From Pelomyxa schiedti (Eukaryota; Protista; Evosea), in NCBI GenBank assembly GCA_020536535.1, contig JAHLWZ010000041.1:7839-71838 (forward strand): a DNA stretch of 64,000 bases, written 5' to 3'. The notes beneath the pieces were generated by a model. That model made no database searches. It was not told the DNA's origin and worked only from the letters and a program-made list of their open reading frames with translations. Below are positions 800 to 63,269 of the stretch, one piece after another. A program made the position numbers and the translations under genes. Each line of letters opens with the position of its first letter. The first letter of the stretch is position 1.

Positions 800-3700
800 T
801 TTTGGCCAAAGTTACCATCAAGGAGACATTCGGAGAAAGCACGCAACAGATGAGGAAGGAAATGTACAATTCAACAAGGAAGCGAAGATGCACCCAATTT
901 GCACAACAATCAAGGCAAAAAGAAGCGTTTTGCGAACGCCTTTCCATCATGCCAAAATTTTTTCAGCAAAAAAGATTTTGCTTTGTTGTGGTTAAGTGTT
1001 GTTGGTTCTGTGTGTCACAACCAACAGTCAGCAGTCTACAGCACCAGGTCACTCATTGTGCATTCCTCCCATAATACAACTGAAAAGGTGGGAGGGTCGC
1101 TTGTTTTGTTGGCGCGCTCTGGCGTGAAGGACAGACTGACACCATAGAGCAGTGTTGCAATTCCCCATAAGTCATTTGCTGTTCAAAATGCCAGTTGGAG
1201 TTGACAACCGTGTTTTTCCGTTCTCAGAGAGCGAATTGGCTCGAAATCATGGAAAAGGTCGTGGCAAGTGCTCCAATTGCAGACTCCCACTTGGTGTTGT
1301 ATTCATTTCATGGACTACGTATGTTTCCCTTACTCCTTCTTTGGGATAAAATTCACTGAATACAGCTCCCTTGTTTTATCTATTGGTGTAATGGTGGTAG
1401 TTACTGAGTACTTCTCTACGAAATCGCTGGAATCAAGTCTATCCAAGTCTTCAAGGGAGGTTGTGAATGAGAGAATTTACCGAGCTGTGGAGAAGTATGA
1501 ACCATTCAACTGTAGCTTCCATTATGGGTCTAAGTTTGAATAGTATTTTCAATGAAGGCATCGAAGCCGCATATTTTACGAGAGACTACACACTGCAGAC
1601 ACCTCTGCTAAACGATACTGAGAGGTTGATCTGGAGAAAGAAATTGAATACTACTGGGAGGTACAGTATTAGCCAGTAGGGGCATAATCATTGAAACGGG
1701 AAAGGTTTGAGGAAGGAAGAGTACTTTATTCATATTCCACTCAGCACCCAGCTGTGAGACTTATTGGATTTTGGAGGTTCAATTGTCTTACTTTCCACCA
1801 GCCTCACCTCTTTGACAGGTATTCATCACGTGAGGATCAGACAATAATGCAAGTGGAGACTGTGACACGAGGTTAGGATCCCTATCACTTTCGAAAGTTT
1901 TTCCCACAGCTAAATAGGGATTCCTCTATTTTGTTTTTCGGACAATTCCACTGGCTACGAGTATGGCCAGTATCACGTAAATACAAGTACCTCAGTATTC
2001 TTTAAATCAGATCAAGCTTATAAAACAATTTTCTACATCGGCGCCAATCCAGTGTGTATCTTGTCATTCATTCACTAGCTCACACTGTCCCAGCTTTTCC
2101 CGTTCTTCATGTCCCATGAAGGGATACATGTATCCGATCCCTACCAGATTATTCTTCCTGGGCTAGAGAGTGTACTTACATTGGTTCTGTTCAATCTTAT
2201 TGAACACTATGAATCTGGAAAGGCAATATGCTGGAGAGCGGCCATCAATGTTGAGGCGCTTTCAGCCTTTGTGGAGGTCTGAGATACCCGCTTTGGCGTA
2301 TCTGATTTTTTTAGGCTTTGCCACTGCCAACAGGGTCTCACGTTGCCGTGATTGAAACAAATTTCCGTATGATGGCTGCATCGGAACCAAACCTCGTTTT
2401 GAATTCTTCAAGCAAATACCGGGTATTCAAATGAATACGTTAACGCGAGAGCTGTTTGTTGCATGTATATCTGACATCAATCTAACAGTATTTCTTGCCT
2501 GATGTCAACGAACCTGTATTGGCAGCTACTGGAAAGTACCTTGAAAGTCGTTATGATAGTATGTAGGCAGCAATCGTACCATTTACTCAAGTCATTCAAA
2601 ATAACCAACGAACTAAAAGATATGTCTATGCTACCAAGGAATTTCTCAGTAGTCACCACTTTTTCGGGAGTTAAAACTGTCATTGATGTAACACAATGGA
2701 GATTAAATGAAAACAGTACAACCATATGGATTATATTGGTACTTATTAATTATTTCCTCCTCAAGTTACCATGACTCCAGGTCTCCCCTGCAAAGGGTCC
2801 GTCTAGCCAATATCTTGCCATAACTGGCTTATGCATTTCCATATTTACTCTTGTTGGGATTATCGCCTCCACCATAACCAGCATGTACACCCCAACACTC
2901 CCAAACATTTTATTCACTGCCTCTATAGGATGATAAAAAAACCTCTCGGACTTGTTGCAAAACTGTTAGGCAGTATATCTCAGCTTGATTTTGAAAGTAA
3001 AGGACGGGAATCGAACTTCTTCAAACGAAATTCCCCGATACGAGAGATAGATGATATTCAGACTAGCTACTACTCTCTGGAGGTTGGCTTGAAGTCTCTA
3101 TCATGCTATGTTCCTGGTTCCCTTGCAAAACTCCTTGTTCGCAGGTACTTTGTATGACACTAAGCTATTACATCTTCAAATTATGTGCATTAAATGCATG
3201 TCTTTAGTGACTATGAACCGCAAATTGGTGTCAAAGAAGGCAATTGTACTGTTATGTTTCTTGATGTCCAAGGATTTTCCACTCTTTGTGAAACTGTAAA
3301 TAGTGAAAAAGGTTTCTCCTTTTTATAAGGAGTTAACTGAATGTGTATTGTACTAGTTTTTACTGCTCTGGGAGAGTGTTTCGATAGCCTAAGTACGATT
3401 ATTTGCAGTTATGGTGGAACAATAGACAAGGTTCGTAACCTTATTGGAAATCTTCATGCTCCTCACTGTTTTTTTTTTAGTTTATAGGTGATGGTATGTT
3501 TTCATTTTCCACATTGATGTGCAATAACCCTTTTTCCTCTACTAGCAATTATGGCGTTTTGGAATGAAGTGCGCACTTTTTTCCTTTACTTCTCTGCGAT
3601 CTCAAAATAAGTAAATATAGCCAGAATATGTTGATAATCATCCATCAGTGGCGATGCACGCCGTCTTCGAGTGCCAAAATAAAATCACTGAGCTACAGGC

Positions 3701-8216: not shown

Positions 8217-8651
8217 ACTAAAAAAAAGCTACCCAGCATAACTAAACTTAGCTCTAGGTAAAGTTCCCAACAGCAAAGCATCGATTACAATGACAACCAA
8301 TTCTCTTGTGTCACCACTATCTGATTCAGTTGTATCAGTACAAGAAAAGGCTACAGTGACTCGCCGTGTTGACCAACCAAACACGGCAATCCTCGCCATG
8401 TGACATCTCTACTGTGTAAAACAGCTTCTAAAGGAAACAAAATCCTTTGTGTGTTTTGGTGGCCTTTCACTTTGATCAATGAAACTTCCAACTCCTCGAT
8501 GTAGAAACACGGCAGGAGGCCCCGGTGCCCTCTGAGCTTAATCAATTCGGTACTCAGGAGGTTCAACTCCGATTTTTTTAGAAGTCACGATTTTTTTTTT
8601 TCGTTTTAGTTTTTTCAAAAGCAAGTAACTAGAGAAAAAAACAAAAAAAAA

Positions 8652-10948
8652 ATGAGCGTTAAGAACCTTATCGCTGGACCACCTGAAATCAGACGGGAGG
8701 AAATTCACTACAACCCGTCCACTGACCTTTTAGGTGGCGGTGCTTATGGTGACGTCTTCAAAGGTATTTTTTCGGTGCTTGTGTGGTTTCGCCCCTGTCA
8801 TACCACTTGCTCCTGGCACGAACTTAAAACGAAACGCTCTACGTACATAAGAATTAAAAAGAAAAAAGGGAAAAAAAAATTAACCACAAACCAAAACAGC
8901 CCAAGTGTCTGGTATTCCCGTTGCTCTCAAGGTCCCAAAGAAACAGGAATGGTCCAGCCCGGAAGAGCTTGCCGCTTTCAAGGAGGAAGTAGCTATTTTG
9001 AAGTGCGCCCTCAACCCTTTCTTTTGCCGAGTCGTCTAACAACAACCCAGGAGCATCTTCCACACTAATGTCGTTTTATTCCTCGGTACCTCGATTTTGC
9101 AGTCCTTTTTGTTTGTTTCGCGGTCGCCTAATCAACCGCAGGCGCTTGCACAGCTACAGGTAATGTGATGATCGTTTTGGAGATGATGCGCACGGACTTG
9201 GATAAAGTCCTACATGAGCCTGAGAACTTGCCCCCCGACATTCAAAAGTTCATGCCTCTCACGTTGGCAAAAAAACTTAAACTTGCTCATGATACTGTAT
9301 GACAAAGGGGTTTTGTGCCTGTCTAAATCGCACAAGGTTCTCGGAATAGCATGGCTGCACAATATCTCCAACGTTGTTCACAGGGATCTTAAGCCTGGTA
9401 TGGTGCTCTTCTTCGGTTTCCAGCATTTCACATTCTTTTCAGCCAACTTGCTTCTTGACGAAAATTTCCGAGTCAAGGTATCTGATTTTGGCTTCAGCCA
9501 ATTCTTCCATCCAGCAAAAAAACACATCAGTAGCAAGGAGCCTGTCAAGGGGACCAGTTACCTTTCTTGCTTGGTTGTGTAATAGAATTCTAATGCGCTC
9601 TTAGAGTTGTATCTAGCCCCTGAAGTGTGGCACTCAACACCGGCCTCGACTGCGTCTGATGTGTATGGCTCGGTCTTACAGTAATACAACTCACTTTTAA
9701 AAGATATGCGTTTGGGCTAATTCTTTGGGAGCTGTACACAGAGGAAGAACTGTTCTCTCAATACAGTGATGTCGACCCCTTCTATCGTGAAGTCATAGTT
9801 GGGGGTGTAAGGCCGGCTATACCCCCCTATGTTCCCAACCCACGCGCACCTGCCAATACTCCTGCCATGCCCACGCTTCCATCCTTGGTCCGTTTTGATT
9901 ATACTTGATGTTTTTTCCCTCATTATCTACTCAAAGGCCGACCTGATGCGACGGTGCTGGGATCCCAGACCTGAAGTGGTATGCAAGATGACTCAAGCCT
10001 ACAGTACATCTCACTTGTCTCTTCAAGCGCCCCAGTATCTCTCAGGTGCTTGTTCAACTTGAAAGTATTATGATCGAGTCTGTTGTTGCTGCTCCCTCAG
10101 GCAGAGCCTTCTGGAAGAAGCACTTTGGGTCCACAAGTGGGGTAATTTTAACTCACTCCTTCTCTCTTCTTTAACAAACTGGTGACAGGCCAACTCCGGT
10201 TTGCAACTGATGGTTTCGTGGGAGGCATTTGCAGCTGCAGTATCGGCTGAAACTGGCGTACCTACCACTGCCTTCCCGCACATTGAAAAGTTGGCTTGTG
10301 GTGAGAACTGACCGTTTATATTCCTGAACTAAATCTCGCAAAGAAACTGGTGGTGTTGAAGCCACGCGCTTTGACCTGCTTCAAAAGTGGTTTGGTGACT
10401 TCTTTGTCACAGGGAAAACGTTCATTCTTGCTGAAGTAAGCCCTTGTATCCCTCAAACCACTTTAACCCAACCCCATTGTAGATGAACAACTTGGCTGCT
10501 CAAGAGTACCGACCCATTCTTTTCTTTCAGCACAGAAGTAACATTTACCACTTTATGTAGTTGGTTCAATGGATGGGTGCAGGCCACTGAAGCTGAGCTA
10601 TGGTTGGATAAGCGACCCTCTGGCACATTCCTTGTTCGCCTGAGCACTAATTCACCAACCCAGAATCCGGTCACAATTTCCCGACGCCAAGTCAATGCCG
10701 CCGGAGTGGTAGAGACACACCACCGACGGTTTGTATCCCTCTCACCCGGTTCTTTCTGCTGAATTACTCACAGTGCCACCCGTGTTTCCTATGACCATGT
10801 TCAAGGCAGATACGCTTACCAGATCGCACAACCCAAGGCTGCCACCATTATGCACCCTGACTTGGTATCCCTGGTTGAGGAACTCATTGCCAACCACGAG
10901 CTCACTACTCCCTGCCCCTTCTGCCCCTTCGGTCTCAATTACTCCTAA
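8652..10948 (+). CDS. Shk-like TKL protein kinase with C-terminal SH2 domain
   Basis: LGGGAYGDVFK, PVALKVP, VHRDLKP|ANLLLDENFRVKVSDFGFSQ, LYLAPEVW, LILWELYT and WDPRPE. Then FDLLQKWFG and SH2 EAELWLDKRPSGTFLVRLSTNSP. Ends TTPCPFCPFGLNYS* at 10948. Architecture matches the Dictyostelium Shk family (established knowledge). Confidence 0.9.
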
Positions 10949-17401: not shown

Positions 17402-20400
17402 TTATGGTTGCTCTACTTTGGGAACAACTATCCTGGTGAGTTGCATGGGGTTATTGTATGTGATCCTGGTGCATGGGGAGCCAAGTATCTGCTCCCCCAT
17501 CAACTTCCTCATCAACTCGATTGGAGATACCCCTTGATAGGAGAACCCTTTATGTTTGTAGACATATTCTTTTTGTTCTCGGCCGTTATCCCTGGTGCGA
17601 ATTCTGTTTGTTTTGTGCATAGTTAGTTTGGAAGGAAGTTTGGTTGGGTTTGAGCGAGACTGTGGGTGACACTTGTGCTGTGTGGGTGCAGGTTCTTCTC
17701 ATAAATAAGAATATAGATCACAGAATACATACCTCTTGTACGAAACTCTGCCTTTTTGCCGAACGCAGAACTGAAGTCCTCTTTTTTTGTTACGGCCAAG
17801 TCCGCTTTCGTCTTTCGTCTGCTTTATCCTCACGATGAATTCCTTTTCTTCTCTGAGAATATCCTCACAATCCTGGTCTGTGGCAAACGGGAGGAACCAA
17901 TGTTCTCTTGTCCAGTTGTTCATCTGTGGTGGTGTGAATGAGCTAATGTGTTTGGGTTTTTGGTGGTTGCATACGTCAGTGAGAAGCGATTTCTGAGACA
18001 TGAATCCAAATCCCAAATATCTGAGTAATCTCCTGCAGCGAGTTGTTGTGACCGTATCGGTTGTGTCATCTGCGTGATATCACGATTAAATGTTAGAATA
18101 GAATAGAATAGAATAGAACAGAACAGAACGAAAGGAAAATTTTGAACTGAGTATGCTGGGTTAAGACAAAAATGTTTCATCATCATACCACAAGCTAACT
18201 TTTTGATGCCCGGGAGATATTCACGGCTATCTTCGGCAACAGCGGCCACGAATTCGTCCCATTGCACAGTCTCCTTGGCGCCGAAATTTGAAAACCACCA
18301 CTGGGTGACTTCCGTATCTTTGAGCTGCAGTCCTATCCTTATCCTTGTCAAGGTCTCAATTACTTCTTTGATCGATGGTCTCTGCAAGAGGAGAGAAAGT
18401 GAGTAAGTACAGAAGGAACACGGGAGAGCCAGAAGATTGAGAAGGAGGTGGGTTGGGAGGGAAAGAACAAGAGTGTTGATTCAAAACAAGTGGCGGCACA
18501 CCGAGGTTGGGTTCGAGTCCCACATCCTGGTTATCAGATCCCTCTTTAGCAATTTTAATGGGTTAAGAAGAAGTGCGCAATCACGCCATACCAATCCAGG
18601 GTGCATGGTGGGTGGAAGGCCAGGCCTGTCGCCATTCACACAGACACTTTGATACAATTCAATACGGTCATCCCAACCTCTGTCCTTGTGAAACTGCTCT
18701 TGGCCTGTGAATAACTCGCCGAATGTAAGCCCCAACGAGTAACTAATCAGTGAATATTAGCCACCCGCATCACTCCCTCCACTCTCATCACGTACACATC
18801 CGCAGCCGTCGAAGCAGTGTGTTCCGCATAAAAGAACTGTCCAGATTCGTCCACAAAATGTTCGGCTATTGCCACCTGCTCGAGCAATTCAGGCGCGAAG
18901 TACCGCACTGGAATGGGGAAAGAAAGGAGTGAAATAAGAAAGGCAAAAAAAAAAGTAAAAGGTGTGGCAAAAAGTTTACCATCTCCCATAACATCTTCAT
19001 TCTCAAGGCTGGTTTTCCCTGGTGGGAGCTTGCAGCAACATCCGAAATCGCACATCTGGGGATGAAAGAGAGTGGCATTTTCTATGTGAGTTTCGAAAAG
19101 TCGTGAAGGAAAAGCTCACGGCCAGGCACACACCTTTATTTTGAATCCTTCTTCCAGCAAGAAGTTTTGGGGCTTGATATCACTGTTATTGGGAGCGTGA
19201 GTGGAGCTTGAATATGGCAACGAGTTCTACCGGTGAATTACACCGAGGGTCCCATGAAGAAGAGCAATTGGACGGGCCATCTGTGTGGCCAGCTGCAGGT
19301 TGATTTTCATATGCAAGCCGTCGCCAATGAACTTCCTCAGGCAGGATGGCACGTGCCGTGGGTCCTGAATGACCTTACCCAAGTCGGTGCACGACTTTGG
19401 CATTACAAGTTGTACTGTGTAAGTTGAATTGCTGCCTTCCTCGGGGAAAACATGAGCTCCTGAGAACGGGAAGAACGGTAAGTAAATGAAGACTTCAGCA
19501 GTCATTATGTGAGAGCACAGCACAAAACATGTGCTTTAGAAATAATGATAATATCTCTTAATAATATTCCAGCTATAAGAAAATATTTACCCATCAGTCT
19601 CACGATATTCTCATGGCCACAAGACCTGCAAAAAAAAAAAAAAGATGATGAAGTGAGAAAACACACATATTTTTGAAAACCAAGCACAACAGCACAGCAA
19701 ACGCAAAAGGGTTGAAGTGAGGGACATTACTGCAGTATCAAGGCGTCCCTCTCCAGGAGCTTCGTCGGGTCCGCAACTTTTTCGATCTGTTTTACAGCAA
19801 CATGACCTGCTCCACCCAGGTGGATTCCTTTTTTTGTTCATGGTTACACTAGAAGGTGGACTCTGAGAGATCAAAAAGTTACCTGCAAACACTTTACCAA
19901 AGTAGCCCTTACCAAAGGGTTTCTCCTGGAGCTCGAGTTCACTGGGTTTGATTTCCTGCAGGGTCATCAACTGCTTCATCTTGTGCTGTTTTTCTAGCCA
20001 CGTCTCCTTCTCTTTCCTGTTCTGGTCACTCTCGCTCTCTCTGCTCTCGCTCTCGCTGCTCTCGCTCTCGCTATGGATACGGCTACTACCAATATCCTCC
20101 TGAGACTCAAAACCATCATGTGTGTCTGGAAAACCTCTGTATATGTCTCTCTCTGCGCAGGTAGTTACCCGGGGCCTCTTCACCTGACTACTACGGCCAG
20201 CCCCAGCACCACCACCACCATGGTAGTAATAGGATACATCCCTCCCCGTCCTCACCCTCCTCCTCGTCCTTCCGCGACCATGGAAACCACTACTTGTACT
20301 TGGTGATCTGCTCCTTGAGTGTGGGCTACTGCCCCTGCTCTCACTCGTTCTGCCGCCTGTGGTAGACCTGCGATTCATCGAATCTGCACAACTAGAAGAC

Positions 20401-21505
20401 CTCGTCTTGCTCCTGCTCCTGCTCCTGCTCCTGCTGTTTCTCCCTCTCGTTTGCAAGGTAACAGGCAAATGTGCGGTCGAGGAGGCCTCAGAAGCAGTCT
20501 TCGCGGCGGAGTGGTGCCGGGGAGGTTTCGCAAGCAGCTGTTGCTCAAAGTAAGGTTCCACGTTTGCCGCCGCACCCAATGTGCGCTCAGTACTTCTTCT
20601 TTCATCAGAGTTATCGTAAGTTTTCGTGCTGCTGGCGCTGCCTTGATGATGAATGATGGTGCCACCACCATACCCCTTTGTGGTTGCTGTTGTTGCACTT
20701 GAAGAAGAAGAAGAACTGCTGCATGCGTAATGGAAGCCGCCCTTGTTGTTGTAGTTGTGGCTGTTGGCTGCAACGTCATTGGGGGGGATTATCAGCACAC
20801 CGTTTTCAGAACGCCATTTGGATGTTGGAGCGGGGGTTGGTGTTCTAGGTTTATTGGTTGCAACTGCTGTGATTGTTGTTGTTGTTGTGGTTTTCGGTTT
20901 CGCTCTCGGTGGTTTGCAGTGCAACTTGCTTGGGTTTTTCCTTACTGGACCCTTGCCCTGATGCTTATAGGCGTATGCGGAGCTCATTTCGTTGAGCACT
21001 TGAGTGGGGGTTTTGAGGGGGAGGAGCGATTTGCCATCGCGTTGCCGTTGGTGATCTTGGAGCTGGGATATAGAGAGCCAGGCAATGTGCTTGCCTAAGT
21101 TTTTGAGGAAGGGTGGGCTGGAGGCAGCCTTGCGCTGCGCCGCAGCTGATTTGAACAGTACCATGGTCACGTCTCCATCGCTTTTCCAGCGGTCTCTGTT
21201 GTTGTGGTTGGTTTGTTGTGTTGGTTTGTGTTGAAAGAGAGGGAGGAGAGCAAGTTGGTTTTTGTGCGAGACGAGAGAACAATCAAATCTGAATAAGTAA
21301 ATAAATTGGTCTGTGGGTTTGTGCGGGGGGCACACATTCCGGGCGCGGCTTCGTCGAGTTCCTTCCACTTCAAACCAGTCAACGAATCGGTGGTGTAGAG
21401 CGCGTGGCAGTCCGCCGACAAGAACACGCCCGACGACGAAGTCGTGGTCGTTGTCACAGTAGCACCAACACCGCTGTTGCTGTTGCTGTTGTTGTTGCTC
21501 GCCAT
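17402..21505 (-). CDS. TKL kinase with N-terminal divergent RRM-like domain, long low-complexity linker, EF/helical region, SH2 domain and Tyr tail (paralog A)
   Basis: EIKPSELELQEKPFGKGYFGKVFAG, VAVKQIEK, HENIVRLMG, VIHR|DIKPQNFL, MCDFGC, YFAPE, AADVY, LTFGELFTG, RMWDSNP, QRPSIKEV. SH2 WTREHWFLPFATDQDCEDIL..EFIVRI. Tail TYNNPMQLTRIVVPKVEQP* ends at 17402. Candidate ATG (MASNNN) at 21505. Confidence 0.85.
18093..18130. repeat. (ATAGA/ACAGA)n pentanucleotide microsatellite, intronic
   Basis: gaatagaatagaatagaatagaacagaacagaacg read directly. Confidence 0.8.
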
Positions 21506-22111
21506 ATTCACGTGTATATTTCTTTTCCCACTTCCTTTTTGTGCTTGTCGGTGGTGCGGCACCCTCCTCCGCGCGGTGAAAAAAAAAAAATTGCACGCAG
21601 CTATAATTTTTTTTCCTTTTCTTTTTTCAAAAACATTTGGCTGAGATACACAACTTACTGCACTGCAAAGCGTCAATCCCATTTCATCCTTCCAAACAAC
21701 CCCTTTTGTTTTGGCTACAACACCAAATTATTATATTAGCACAGGTTCTTTGCTTGGGTGATTCATTCAGCCCGCCGAAAACCGTGTGTACAGCACACAT
21801 CCGCACACAAGTAGGCATAATGTGGAAGAAGCTCTCCAGAAGATTGCCTGCCCAACCAGCTGGTCTACACACCTCTTAGAAGGTTCCTAATGAATGACAT
21901 TTGACATTTACAGCAGTGTGATTCTCAGCACACCCTCATAACTCTCTTACAACATGGAGCTCTCTCGTTGTTGGCAATAAGAGACCCACTCCAGCCAGCC
22001 ACTACGGCCGTTTTCTGTGCTTTTATAGAAAGGAATAAAAACCTCACACCACCACAGCTGCTGTTTGGAGCCAGGAAAAAAAAACAAAAAGAAAAAAACG
22101 GAACGGATTTA

Positions 22112-22850
22112 TTTTTGGAGAAAGTCTAGGAATAACCTGTGTCGGCACAATAACTCGGCTCGGGGGGTGTCTTGGGGGGTTGCGGTGCTGGGTTGGTTTC
22201 CCGCGGGTGGTTCTTCCTTCTCCTGCAAAAGTACAAGTTAGTGCTATATTCAAANNNNNNNNNNNNNNNNNNNNNNNNNNNNNNNNNNNNNNNNNNNNNN
22301 NNNNNNNNNNNNNNNNNNNNNNNNNNNNNNNNNNNNNNNNNNNNNNNNNNNNNNGTAATTTTTCAAAGTCAGAAAAGTACACACTTTAAAAGTTGGACCC
22401 ACACACCACAACCCCCCAAAACAACCTGTGTCGGCACAATAACTCGGCTCGGGGGGTGTCTTGGGGGGTTGCGGTGCTGGGTTGGTTTCCCGCGGGTGGT
22501 TCTTCCTTCTCCTGCAAAAGTACAAGTTAGTGCTATATTCAAAGTCGGAAAGCACACACTTTAAAAAAGTTCCAGGGTCCAATAATATCCAAGAGAGAAC
22601 AGAACCACAACCCCAATAACCCTGTGTCGGCACAATAACTCGGCTCGGGGGGTGTCTGGGGTTGTGGTTCTTCCTTCTCCTGCAAAAGTACAAGAAGTTA
22701 GTGTTGTAATTTTTCAAAGTCAGAAAAGTACACACTTTAAAAGTTGGACCCACACACCACAACCCCCCAAAACAACCTGTGTCGGCACAATAACTCGGCT
22801 CGGGGGGTGTCTTGGGGGGTTGCGGTTATTCCTGGAATTTTCTACCAAGT
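22112..22850. repeat. Tandem array with at least 4 copies of a 36-bp invariant core, internal hairpin arms and imperfect terminal inverted repeats; includes a 100-N assembly gap at 22255-22354
   Basis: Core cctgtgtcggcacaataactcggctcggggggtgtc at ~22136, ~22426, ~22622 and ~22776. Block gtaatttttcaaagtcagaaaagtacacactttaaaagttggaccc at 22355 and ~22706. Left end ttggagaaagtctaggaataacc vs reverse complement of the right end ttggtagaaaattccaggaataacc. Confidence 0.85.
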
Positions 22851-58442: not shown

Positions 58443-58520
58443 TTCGTGAAAAAAGACTTTTAGGGGAACAGGTTTATTGTTTTTCGTAAAGGCACGCTGT
58501 GTTTGTTGTTGTTTACGGCT

Positions 58521-61500
58521 AGGGTTGTTGGTTATGGTCTTCAGCTTTAACGATCCTGGTGAGCTGCATGGGGTCATCGTAGGTGACCTCGGTGTACGCA
58601 ACCTCGAGAAGCTCTTGCTGCATCATTTCGTCTATAAGATCGATGGGTGAATTACCACGGATGCATCTGTAATCTTTGTCGTAGACGTAATGTGGTTGTC
58701 CGTTCTCAGCGTAGTAGTGAAATCTGTGTTGTTGTGTATGTGGTTAGCGGAAGGAGGTTTGGGTGTGAGTGCGGTGCGTGCGAGAGAGTGCAGTGGGGCA
58801 GTGGGGGCAGTGAAAGTGTTCATAATTGGCGATTTGTGTGCCTTCTAGTGGTATAAATAAATATTATGTATGGAATAGACAATAATAGACAAGTTCAGGA
58901 TTCAATCCATACCCCTCATATTCCACCGTTTCGCCACGCCTAATGCAGAACTCAAGTCCCGTTTTCTGGATCCTAACTAGGAATTCGCCTTCTTGTGTGA
59001 GGAGATGCGTACAATCCTGGTCTGTTGCAAAGGGCAAAAACCAGTGTTCCCTTGTCCACTTGTTCATCTGGTTGTGGGTTGAGTGGGTGTAAGTAATTAA
59101 GTAAATGAGCAAACAACTCTACGCGGGCACGGGAATTGTTGTTGTTGTGAGTGGGGTTGGGCATACTTCGGTGAGAAGCGATTTTTGAGCCATGAAGCCT
59201 AATCCCAAGCATTTGACCAACTCGCTAAAGCGTTTTGTTGTGAGAGTTTCGGTTTTGTCATCTGAGTGTGATTAGACAGATGGAGGAGAAGTTTGTGGTG
59301 TTGTTGTTATTGTGGGTGGTGGTCGTGTAGGAAATTTAAAACAGGTGTCTGGAAAGTACTCATACCACATGCCAGTTTCTTTATTCCTGGGAGATATTCA
59401 TTGGTGTCTCCCGCGATGGCTGTCACAAAGTTTTGCCATTCCACGGTTTCGCGGACCCCAAAGTTGTTTATCCACCATTGCGTGGCTTCCGAGTTCTGGA
59501 TCTCCAGCCCAATGTTCATAGCCGTCAGTGTCTCAGTGACCTCCTTGATGGAGGGTCTCTGGCAGAGAGAAATAAGTACAGTACAGAAGAGCATAATACT
59601 CACCACTGCTGGGTCAGGGTCCCACATCCGTGCAATCAAATCCCTCTTTTTTTTAAATAAATTTTATAATGATGAGTCCGGTTGTCGATGAAGGGAGAGA
59701 AGGAAAACACAGCACAACGCAACACAACACAACACAACACCAGCACGGAGGGTTGGTTCATTCATATACACACCAATAGCGGGTGCATGGTACGTGGAAG
59801 GTCAGGCCGCTCACCGTTCACACATATACTTCGATACAATTCTTCACGATCCCTCCAGCCTTTATCCTCCTGAAACTGGTCCCTTCCTGTGAATAACTCA
59901 CAGAAAGTAAGCCCCAAGGAGTAACTAAGAGGGAAGTGCCATCATGAGTGGAGGGTTATATTAAGTCATTCACGTTTTTTCAGTCTCACACATACACGTC
60001 GGTAGCCGTCGATGCAGTGTGTTCGGCATAAAGGGGCTTTCCATTTGCAACATATTTGCCAACAAAGTTTTCCGCTATTGCCACCTGCTCCAGTAGCTCG
60101 GGCGCAAAGTACCTCACTAGAATGGAAAGAAGAAAGGAGAGGAGTCAAAGCAAAGCAACAAAAGTGACTGCGCAAAAGCTTACCATCTCCCAAGATATCC
60201 TTAACATCGAGGCTGTTTCGCCCCTGTGGGAGCTTACTGCAACACCCGAAATCGCACATCTGGTGTGTAGAGGGTGGGTGGATTTTTCCATGAGTTTCGA
60301 AAAGTGCATTGAGTGACACACCTGTATTCTGAATAGTCCCTCATCCACCAAGAAATTCTGCGGCTTGATATCTCTGTTATTTGTTTTAAGAGGGTAGTGT
60401 GCCAGTGGTTATTTATTAGAGAGTTTGATACCGGTGTATTACACCGAGAATCCCATGAAGGAAAGCAACGGGACGGGCCATCTGTCTTGCCAGCTGCACA
60501 TTAGTTCGCAGCTGCTCCGACCCGTTGTGATGACCAATGAACTCCTTGAGGCAAGAGGGCACGTGCCGTGGGTCGTGAATGAGTTTGCCCAAGTCGGTGC
60601 ACGCCTTTGGCATGACAAGTTGTACAGTGTAAAATTGACTTCCTTCGGGGAGGAAAACATGAGCTCCTGATGAGAGATTGGGGTAAGTGAATAGTAGCAA
60701 GCAGAAGCAGAAGCAGAAGCATAAGCACAGCATAAATAAGAGATAGATAGATATGTATGTATTTTCCAAATTTATAAGAAATCTGATAGGTTTTTTTTTT
60801 GTGGATGTTTACCCATTAGCCTCACAATATTCTCGTGGCCAGAAGAATCCCTGTAGGTGGTGGTAGTCTCAGTGAGTGCAAAAAGAAAAAGAAAGAAATT
60901 TGTGTTGTTTAAAATTAGGCAGGCTTCTTAAAAGAGTCAGGAACCAACAACAAAAACAGCAACAATAACAGTCAACACAAAGCCATCAAAAAAGTGTAAA
61001 AGTCGGGTACATTACCGCAGTGGCAAAGCCTCCCTTTCCAAGAACTGCCTTGGGTCTGCAACATTTTCGATTTGCTTCACAGCCACTGGAGTTGCTGCAC
61101 TCACGAGGATCCCTTTTTTTTTGTTTGTTTGTTTTTCCCAGTTACACTCAAAGAAGATTGATGTGATGAGAGGGAAATTACCTGCGAATACTTTCCCAAA
61201 ATAACCACGCCCAAATGGGTTTTTTTGCAGTTCCAGTTCACTTGGTTTGATTTCGTGTGGGGCTGAGGTCCACCCCGCCCTCTTCTGTGATTCAATCCAT
61301 GTCTCCTGTTCAGTATTTCCCTGTGCACCAATGCTCCCACTCCCACTTCCACTCTCGCTGTCACTCTCATTCTCACTACGCGTTCCATAACTTGAGCTTG
61401 AGCTATCCCTGTCAGAGTGATTGTAGGCTATCTGGTTCTCCCTTTCATCACAATCTCTTTCACTTTCATCATCATCTTCATGATCACCACTTTTAGTACT

Positions 61501-63269
61501 GCCTCCATGGGTGTGTTCCCTGCTGTAAATTCTCACACCACTCCCACAGGCACTCCCCTTTCGGCCCCAGGTCATGCCTGTTGACAACAATGGAGTGACG
61601 GAGGCCGACGGCGGTGAAGAGGACGACGACAACAACGATGTGGCACTGCTGCCGGAACTTCCAGATGGCAGCTGCTGATTATTTGGGGCATGGTCCTCCT
61701 GCAGTGATGGTGGTTGTACTCCCATTACCATTGCCATTCCCTCACGTTCTTGTTTCTTCTGCTTTTCTCGATCAATAAGTGGCAGTGGACGGAGGAGTTG
61801 AGCTTCTTCATCTTCTGGGTGGTGCTGGGACACACGCCGCTTTTTGCTCATTCTTCCGCGCAGAAGCTCGTCACCACTGTAGCAGTATCTGGTCTCCTCG
61901 TCCAAAACTGAAGAAGATACAGCGGCTGACTTGTTTCTGGATGAACGCAGGTGTGACGGCGAGGATGTAATTGGGCTGCTGCCTCTTTGAGATTCTTCTC
62001 CCCACTCCCGGTTTATTGCAGTTGGGGGAACGACGACCTGTGCGGGCGGCAAGTCCTCCTTTTCCCGTTCCTCCTCGTTCTGAGCGGTGAAGCTCATGGA
62101 AGTGGAAAAGGAACTGCCATTGTGATCGTGATTGTAATTGTAATTGCAATGGCAATTGGAAGCAGAAGAAGAGCCAGCAGAACTGTAAGAAGTGCAATTG
62201 GTGGCAGCATCATTACATTTGGGACTGAAATTGAGCCTTGACGACCTGGAACTGGAAGTGTAATTGTGCTTGGCAAAGGCAGAAGTTCTGCTGGAGGATA
62301 CATAGGGAGTACAACGGGAAGCGGGACCATTGGTATTGCGAGATGAGGAACTGTTGTACTTTGGTGATGTTATTGTTGGGGTGGTGGTTCTTGGTGGTGG
62401 CGCATAAGAAGTAGGGGGTGGAGCAACTTGCTGTATCGGGCGCTGCAGGGACCTTCGGTTTTGCTCGTCTCGGTTCGCCCTGAACTTCTCCATCTTCTGT
62501 CTCAACTGTGTTGGAGTGAGAAGACTTCGTCCATGAGCGATAAGTTCTTGTTGATGAGCTATGTACTGAGACTCGGTGAGCCAAGTGATTTGAAGTTTAC
62601 CCGATTTCGGGGGATTCAGAGCCGCAGTTCGTTGGGCTTGTAGTGATCGGAACATGACGAATGTAAGGCCATTGTCATGCCCAAAGCAGTCTCTGTGTGT
62701 TTCGGGTGAGTGTTTAGTTTGGTTTGGTTTGGTTTCAAGAGTCAATTGTTGGTATTATACACAGCACACAAACAAAAACAATAAGTAAGTAATTGTGGGT
62801 TTTAGGGAATTGACACAACAGGCACACCACAACACACGTGACGGTTCGTTCATTTTACCCGAAAAACGGGATTATTGATACGGAAGAAAGTGGTGAATCA
62901 CCGAACAATGCATTGAATTTGTTCACAGTGTTGTGTCACATGAGAACAGCACAATGATGGAATGTGAAGGGAGGAGAGAGTAAGTTGGGCTGAAGGGACC
63001 GCAGACAGGAGATACGAGATACAAGATTTCTTGTTGTTTTGTGTGTTACACGGCCAGAAGCACACAACACGAAAGAAAACAACCCAAGCGCTGGAGGGTG
63101 AGTGTGGTTACAGATGGATGGGATCATACAGTCCGGGGGCCACCGCTTCCAACTGCTCTCGTGTCACCTTCGATAACGGGTTCTCCGTGTACAGCGTGTT
63201 CGAGTCCCCACACATGTACACCGGCGACGATCTTGTCGTCGATGTGGTCGCGGTTGTAGCAGGGTACAT
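58521..63269 (-). CDS. TKL kinase with N-terminal divergent RRM-like domain, low-complexity linker, SH2 domain and Tyr tail (paralog B)
   Basis: EIKPSELELQKNPFGRGYFGKVFAG, PVAVKQIENV, HENIVRLMG, VIHR|DIKPQNFL, MCDFGC, YFAPE, RMWDPDP, QRPSIKEV, WTREHWFLPFATDQDC and TYDDPMQLTRIVKAEDHNQQP*. Intron positions match paralog A. Candidate ATG (MYPATT) at 63269. Confidence 0.87.

Follow-up and report, generated by a model that had tools for sequence, protein, structure and literature searches.

Genes A and B, two loci on the minus strand of a 64,000-nucleotide (nt) window of the Pelomyxa schiedti genome (contig JAHLWZ010000041.1), encode predicted protein kinases that share a conserved N-terminal module of about 105 residues. 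Our preferred reading, which we hold with moderate confidence, is that A and B are tandem, lineage-specific kinases of the SHK family and that the module is an orphan domain for protein interaction or autoregulation, not a canonical RNA-binding RNA-recognition motif (RRM). The original prediction, made from the letters of this stretch, had proposed for A a divergent RRM joined to a TKL kinase and an SH2 domain. Gene B occupies about 63269..58520, 41.7 kb away from A. The parts of A, and the N-terminal module of B, are arranged as follows.

21505..17402, minus strand: gene A, 14 exons
21336..21505, minus strand: predicted exon 1 of A, 56 codons plus 2 nt, with an ATG at 21505 and a GT donor at 21335-21334; not in the NCBI model
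21196..21335, minus strand: predicted intron 1 of A, 140 nt, phase 2, GT..AG, interrupting the module right after Ala-Pro-Gly codons
20985..21195, minus strand: second part of the module of A, at the start of exon 2, about 70 residues; predicted β-hairpin, helix, probable strand, and two helices
20013..20984, minus strand: linker of A, about 320 residues, rich in Ser, Arg, Thr, and Gly and of low complexity
18337..19925, minus strand: TKL-type kinase domain of A, spanning the last part of exon 2 through the first part of exon 11
17975..18336, minus strand: EF-hand-like region of A, the rest of exon 11 plus exon 12, between the kinase and the SH2-like domain
17402..17923, minus strand: probable SH2-like C-terminal domain of A, encoded by exons 13 and 14; stop codon at 17404-17402
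62491..63269, minus strand: N-terminal module of B, with exon 1 at 63269..63130 and exon 2 from 62692

The window is eukaryotic in character, with a GC content of ~45% and short introns that have GT-AG ends. Our model of A, built from coordinates, has GT-AG at all of its introns (48-140 nt), no in-frame stops in its exons, and, with exon 1 counted, a product of 984 residues by arithmetic. A word-based protein search identified the NCBI model of this gene, P0001, as a 917-residue protein with the product name 'Dual specificity protein kinase'. P0001 and the 14-exon model are identical from exon 4 on, and at the exon-3 acceptor we judged the NCBI choice (AG at 19829-19828) to be better, which places exon 3 at 19827..19731. 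At its N-terminus, P0001 begins at an internal methionine (21164) that lies within the conserved module, and thus leaves out exon 1 together with 10 codons at the start of exon 2; the NCBI model of B (P0002, 977 residues) likewise begins at an internal methionine inside the module, at about 62655. By comparison of the two paralogues, the public models of both kinase genes lack exon 1, and the N-terminal residues missing number 67 in A and about 60 in B. A 100-N assembly gap (22255-22354) lies inside a repeat array about 750 nt upstream of gene A.

Several lines of evidence indicate that exon 1 is spliced to exon 2, as had been proposed. First, the peptides encoded by the two first exons share 36% identity across their final 33 residues (pairwise E 2e-6), which in A form the first part of the conserved module, and the first ~70 residues encoded by exon 2 are 42% identical (E 1e-9). 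Second, protein-level similarity between A and B extends 5' of the annotated methionine as far as the acceptor site in both copies, and these conserved codons appear to be reachable only via an upstream exon because the open frame of A contains no other ATG there. Third, intron 1 of B interrupts its gene at the same position and in the same phase as intron 1 of A, after Ala-Pro-Gly, even though it is 437 nt long versus 140 nt and no alignment was found between the two introns. Finally, exon-1 DNA shows 58% identity between A and B across its final 33 codons, compared with 27-32% in ungapped intron and upstream controls, and the differences per codon position (14/10/18) are most frequent at the third position, a pattern that fits coding sequence. 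The paralogue comparison therefore gives good support, short of proof, for the joining of exon 1 to exon 2.

The short peptides on which the module was originally defined were found where they had been placed, on the minus strand, in both paralogues. In A, ALYTTDSL is encoded by 21380-21403, DRWKSDGD by 21171-21194, HIAWL by 21075-21089, and the RSRSRSRS run of the linker by 20409-20432; the counterparts of the three N-terminal motifs in B lie at 63174-63197, 62668-62691, and 62578-62592, also on the minus strand. A module shared by the two proteins had been predicted and is present, but it spans ~105 rather than ~90 residues, with two more helices past the last strand. It is an α/β module encoded by the unannotated exon 1 and the start of exon 2. 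An AlphaFold model of the exon-2 part of B (predicted local distance difference test [pLDDT] score 69) has strands at residues 2-6 and 9-13 and helices at 17-25, 40-52, and 60-74, with a 14-residue coil after the first helix.

Searches for relatives of this module returned little beyond A and B themselves. No further copy was found in 52.4 Mb (5337 contigs) of the genome. A profile of the exon-2 part built from A and B, searched in full with HMMER against 1.84 billion representative proteins, recovered only A, B, and three repeat-driven false matches; a word-based homologue search with the module found the gene itself only; and a search of the ESM Atlas gave no usable match. When exon 1 and exon 2 pieces were scanned separately against Pfam, no family was detected at E≤10, including RRM, PB1, RBD, and ubiquitin; these exon-wise scans were mostly fruitless because the exons are short. 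For the partial model of the module (exon-2 part of B), Foldseek returned no matches, and the best match in VIA, at Z 3.0, lies within the noise; 36 rows fell at Z 2-3. The ~105-residue module is real and conserved in both paralogues, unannotated so far, and apparently an orphan.

The assignment of a TKL-type kinase to A stands. In P0001, Pfam Pkinase matches residues 414-700 with E 2e-36, and PK_Tyr_Ser-Thr also matches, with E 1e-29; the glycine-rich loop, the VAVK motif with the catalytic lysine, and the HRD, DFG, and APE motifs are all present; and the closest relative by sequence among solved structures (PDB) is TAK1, a member of the TKL group. The full-length AlphaFold model of A was computed from a 6-sequence alignment and is good for the kinase only, and this part matches MerTK, C-Raf, CTR1, RET, and JAK2 with Z ~25. 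Judged by these motifs, the kinase domain of A is catalytically complete, of TKL type, and predicted to be active.

Downstream of the kinase, the C-terminal domain of A and B is probably a divergent SH2-like domain. The nearest kinases outside the A/B pair, P0007 and P0017, consist of a kinase, a weak Cbl_N2 match, and an SH2 domain that Pfam recognizes clearly. The C-termini of A and B are collinear with these Pfam-positive SH2 domains, with the Trp-Phe start and the FLVR arginine (the residue that binds phosphotyrosine) aligned, and BLAST aligns B with P0007 from the kinase on through the EF-hand-like segment. Residues 803-887 of A are predicted to form αA, five strands, and αB, which is the SH2 order, at pLDDT 35-56. 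For residues 705-917, the best protein-language-model cluster was an SH2 cluster (score 0.80), a result at the level of a lead only. A word-based search with the C-terminal region found A and B only, and hhalign comparison of the exon-13 pair with two SH2 kinases found nothing.

Between the kinase and the SH2-like domain of A, the model contains helix-strand-helix pairs at residues 713-774 (pLDDT 65-80), and this region matches Cbl_N2 weakly, always under the Pfam cut-off (E 0.0011 for exon 11 alone, 0.03 for P0001, and 0.007 for P0002). SHK-type kinases thus share a weak EF-hand-like (Cbl_N2) match located between kinase and SH2 domain, an observation that concerns residues 305-338 and 416-488 of P0007, 710-741 of P0001, and 781-810 of P0002. 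The arrangement suggests that SHK-type kinases carry a unit of EF-hand and SH2 domains like the TKB domain of Cbl, in that a weak Cbl_N2 match immediately precedes the SH2-like domain of A, B, and P0007, and P0007 also has a weak Cbl_N3 match. Unlike Cbl, however, A, B, and P0007 have matches under the Pfam cut-offs, no four-helix bundle, and no RING domain, and the unit comes after the kinase.

In the amoebozoan SHK family, Shk1-5 of Dictyostelium are TKL kinases with SH2 domains, and Shk1 has dual specificity and requires its SH2 domain for membrane localization (PMC1420674). A and B have in common with the Dictyostelium proteins (Shk1-5, or ShkA-E) an amoebozoan host and a TKL-type kinase followed by a C-terminal SH2-type domain; they differ in an N-terminal extension of ~480-540 residues, comprising the orphan module and a disordered linker, and in an SH2 domain that falls under the Pfam threshold. 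In our preferred reading, A and B would follow the SHK design of a TKL-group, probably dual-specificity kinase, then an EF-hand-like segment, then an SH2-type domain, and would have acquired the orphan ~105-residue module on a disordered, fast-evolving tether of ~320-385 residues. By analogy with Dictyostelium Shk1, the SH2-like domain may dock the kinase on tyrosine-phosphorylated partners.

The linker that would serve as this tether had been described as ~400 residues long and completely diverged between the paralogues. The divergence is borne out, as A and B give no alignment after the module until ~40 residues ahead of the kinase, but the length is ~320 residues in A and ~385 residues in B, and in both copies the linker is of low complexity. 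In A it is predicted to be disordered (pLDDT 23-39 in the AlphaFold model). Its arginine-serine (RS) repeats, read earlier as typical of RNA-processing proteins, exist, and their core is the following feature.

20408..20435, minus strand: RS run of A, a perfect hexanucleotide microsatellite, (AGCAGG)x4.7 on the coding strand (period 6, 100% matches, Tandem Repeats Finder)

The 319-residue linker of A contains 20 RS/SR dipeptides, 15 of them in one patch of 50 residues, and no RS run was found in the linker of B. Because the run is a perfect microsatellite without an equivalent in B, the patch is best regarded as an ordinary low-complexity expansion and not as a conserved RS domain. SR proteins combine an RRM with an RS domain; the local RS/SR patch of A is the only likeness to them, its core is a perfect microsatellite that is not kept in B, no RRM was detected, and neither A nor B has the extended, conserved Arg-Ser dipeptides that define the RS domain of SR proteins. 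The linker of A contains another coding tandem repeat (20029-20072, a 15-nt unit x 2.9, 96% matches), which encodes a Ser-Glu run.

What fold the module adopts bears directly on its role, and it may be ferredoxin-like (RRM-like) or β-grasp-like. TKL kinases commonly bear β-grasp-type N-terminal modules, as in Raf and PB1 kinases, and a ubiquitin-like, PB1-like, or Ras-binding-domain-like protein-interaction domain of this kind in A and B would fit a partial model that has a hairpin, then a helix, and then a probable strand. Conservation of the module begins ~12 residues N-terminal to the supposed β1, and this early start suggests an extra strand. The conserved block ahead of the Leu-Tyr-Thr motif could supply that strand and give the order ββαββαβ, an arrangement compatible with a β-grasp as well as with an extended RRM. 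Against this, the exon pieces gave no Pfam match to PB1, RBD, or ubiquitin at E≤10, and the partial model had no structural matches. A β-grasp domain appears rather unlikely.

Whether or not it binds RNA, the module may have an RRM-like fold, with the balance tilted against it. The more specific proposal of a divergent, RNA-binding RRM that, together with the RS-rich linker, couples SH2/phosphotyrosine signaling to RNA processing is quite unlikely. The spacing of hydrophobic and turn residues is compatible with the order β1-α1-β2-β3-α2-β4, and the β-hairpin followed by a helix in the partial model would also fit. A six-frame scan of the genome for RRM_1 (PF00076) at E≤0.05, however, gave 159 matches, of which 150 were listed, none of them on this contig. 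Alignment by hhalign to a reference of 11 complete P. schiedti RRMs assigned a probability of 1% (E 0.054) to the exon-2 part and 0.3% to exon 1. In the register of that alignment, the aromatic positions 3 and 5 of RNP1 are Val/Met in A and Leu/Phe in B; of the RNP2-like stretch, only Leu-Tyr-Thr is retained. From α1 to β3 the module has ~10 residues fewer than RRM_1, the extra strand suggested by the early start of conservation argues against a plain RRM, the RS run is microsatellite sequence that B lacks, and every structural match of the partial model falls in the noise range (Z≤3.0). We also cut an RRM profile where the intron cuts the module and compared each exon piece with its own half and with 1000 shuffles. 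Copy A did not rise above the shuffles, as 137 of 1000 reached the score of its exon-2 piece and 621 of 1000 that of its exon-1 piece; the score of the B exon-1 piece was reached by 100 of 1000. With no Pfam RRM match, an hhalign probability of 1%, and RNP1 aromatics that are not kept, the identification of the module as an RRM is unsupported.

In a variant of this proposal, the module would be a strongly diverged domain with an RRM fold (or a UHM-like one), binding either RNA or a protein involved in RNA processing, and A and B would be the first kinases in which a reader of RRM type is joined to a TKL kinase domain and to an SH2 domain. We consider this very unlikely. The nearest precedent for a kinase joined to an RRM-fold domain would be KIS/UHMK1, a kinase fused to a UHM, which is an RRM-like domain. 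KIS/UHMK1 differs, however, in carrying this domain at its C-terminus, in having a kinase from outside the TKL group, and in lacking an SH2 domain; no sequence similarity was found between the A/B module and RRM families. If the variant were true, phosphotyrosine signaling would be linked to RNA metabolism in an anaerobic amoeba. The architecture with an RNA-binding RRM would be unprecedented, and present evidence does not support it.

It is highly improbable that exon 1 lies outside the mRNA, with the NCBI models right to begin at an internal methionine, as both do, and the upstream similarity reflecting a conserved non-coding or upstream-open-reading-frame element, given that the A/B protein similarity reaches past the annotated methionine to the acceptor, that the open frame of A has no other ATG 5' of this methionine, that a GT donor occurs at the same phase and position in both genes, and that third codon positions vary most.

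Several observations weigh against our preferred reading of A and B as SHK-family kinases with an orphan, non-RRM module. First, not every RRM comparison was negative: the sole local hhalign alignment places the exon-2 stretch on RNP1/α2, with an exon-1 column in matching register; the RNP1-like stretch in exon 2 of B scores 4.8 bits in the half-profile test, a value reached by just 2 of 1000 shuffles; and ~6 of the 36 sub-threshold VIA structural matches (Z 2.1-2.8) are RRM chains. Second, Pfam SH2 (PF00017) gave no match over threshold on A or B, and the SH2 domain of both could be degenerate because it goes unrecognized by Pfam and is modeled with low confidence; the SH2 part of the original prediction is probable, by collinearity and the FLVR arginine, and is not endorsed by Pfam. 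Third, exon 1 of A is predicted from sequence comparison, and its start codon may be the ATG at 21505 or an in-frame ATG at 21682; B, too, has an additional in-frame ATG upstream, and neither of these upstream ATGs shows conservation. Finally, a protein-interaction or regulatory domain is the most likely identity of the N-terminal module, with a function that we infer and nothing more.

A third SHK-like gene in the window supplies a further comparison.

~8650-10760, plus strand: third SHK-like gene, with HRD at 9379-9387, DFG at 9484-9492, a weak EF-hand-like match at 10165-10299, and SH2 at 10562-10747

Its SH2 domain is canonical and scores over the Pfam cut-off (25.1 bits), and the gene begins just ahead of the kinase, without an N-terminal extension such as that of A and B, which is absent from ordinary SHK genes. 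Genes of SHK architecture are common in P. schiedti; across its genome, SH2 has 39 matches at E≤1, 35 of which exceed the Pfam cut-off, and about 10 further loci resemble the EF-hand-like exon. Among the matches listed, RRM_1 and SH2 occur within 5 kb of one another at one place in the genome only, a region of contig C802 (20500-29000). This candidate RRM-SH2 fusion was rejected, as it consists of two separate genes with a stop codon between them: an SHK-like kinase (830-1945, plus strand) that ends with a stop at about 1944, and ~400 nt downstream an eIF3g-like gene (2320-3200) with a CCHC zinc knuckle and an RRM.

The core of kinase, EF-hand-like segment, and SH2-type domain in A and B is of a kind already known, and what is new is the N-terminal module and the corrected gene models. 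The present analysis corrects the annotation of two P. schiedti kinase genes and defines a conserved, apparently orphan domain of ~105 residues that is fused to SHK-type kinases. As judged from its SH2 matches, this anaerobic amoeba has a strongly expanded set of phosphotyrosine-reader genes, and A and B, together with the genome-wide SH2 counts, extend the view that Archamoebae possess a large SH2/TKL toolkit for phosphotyrosine signaling.

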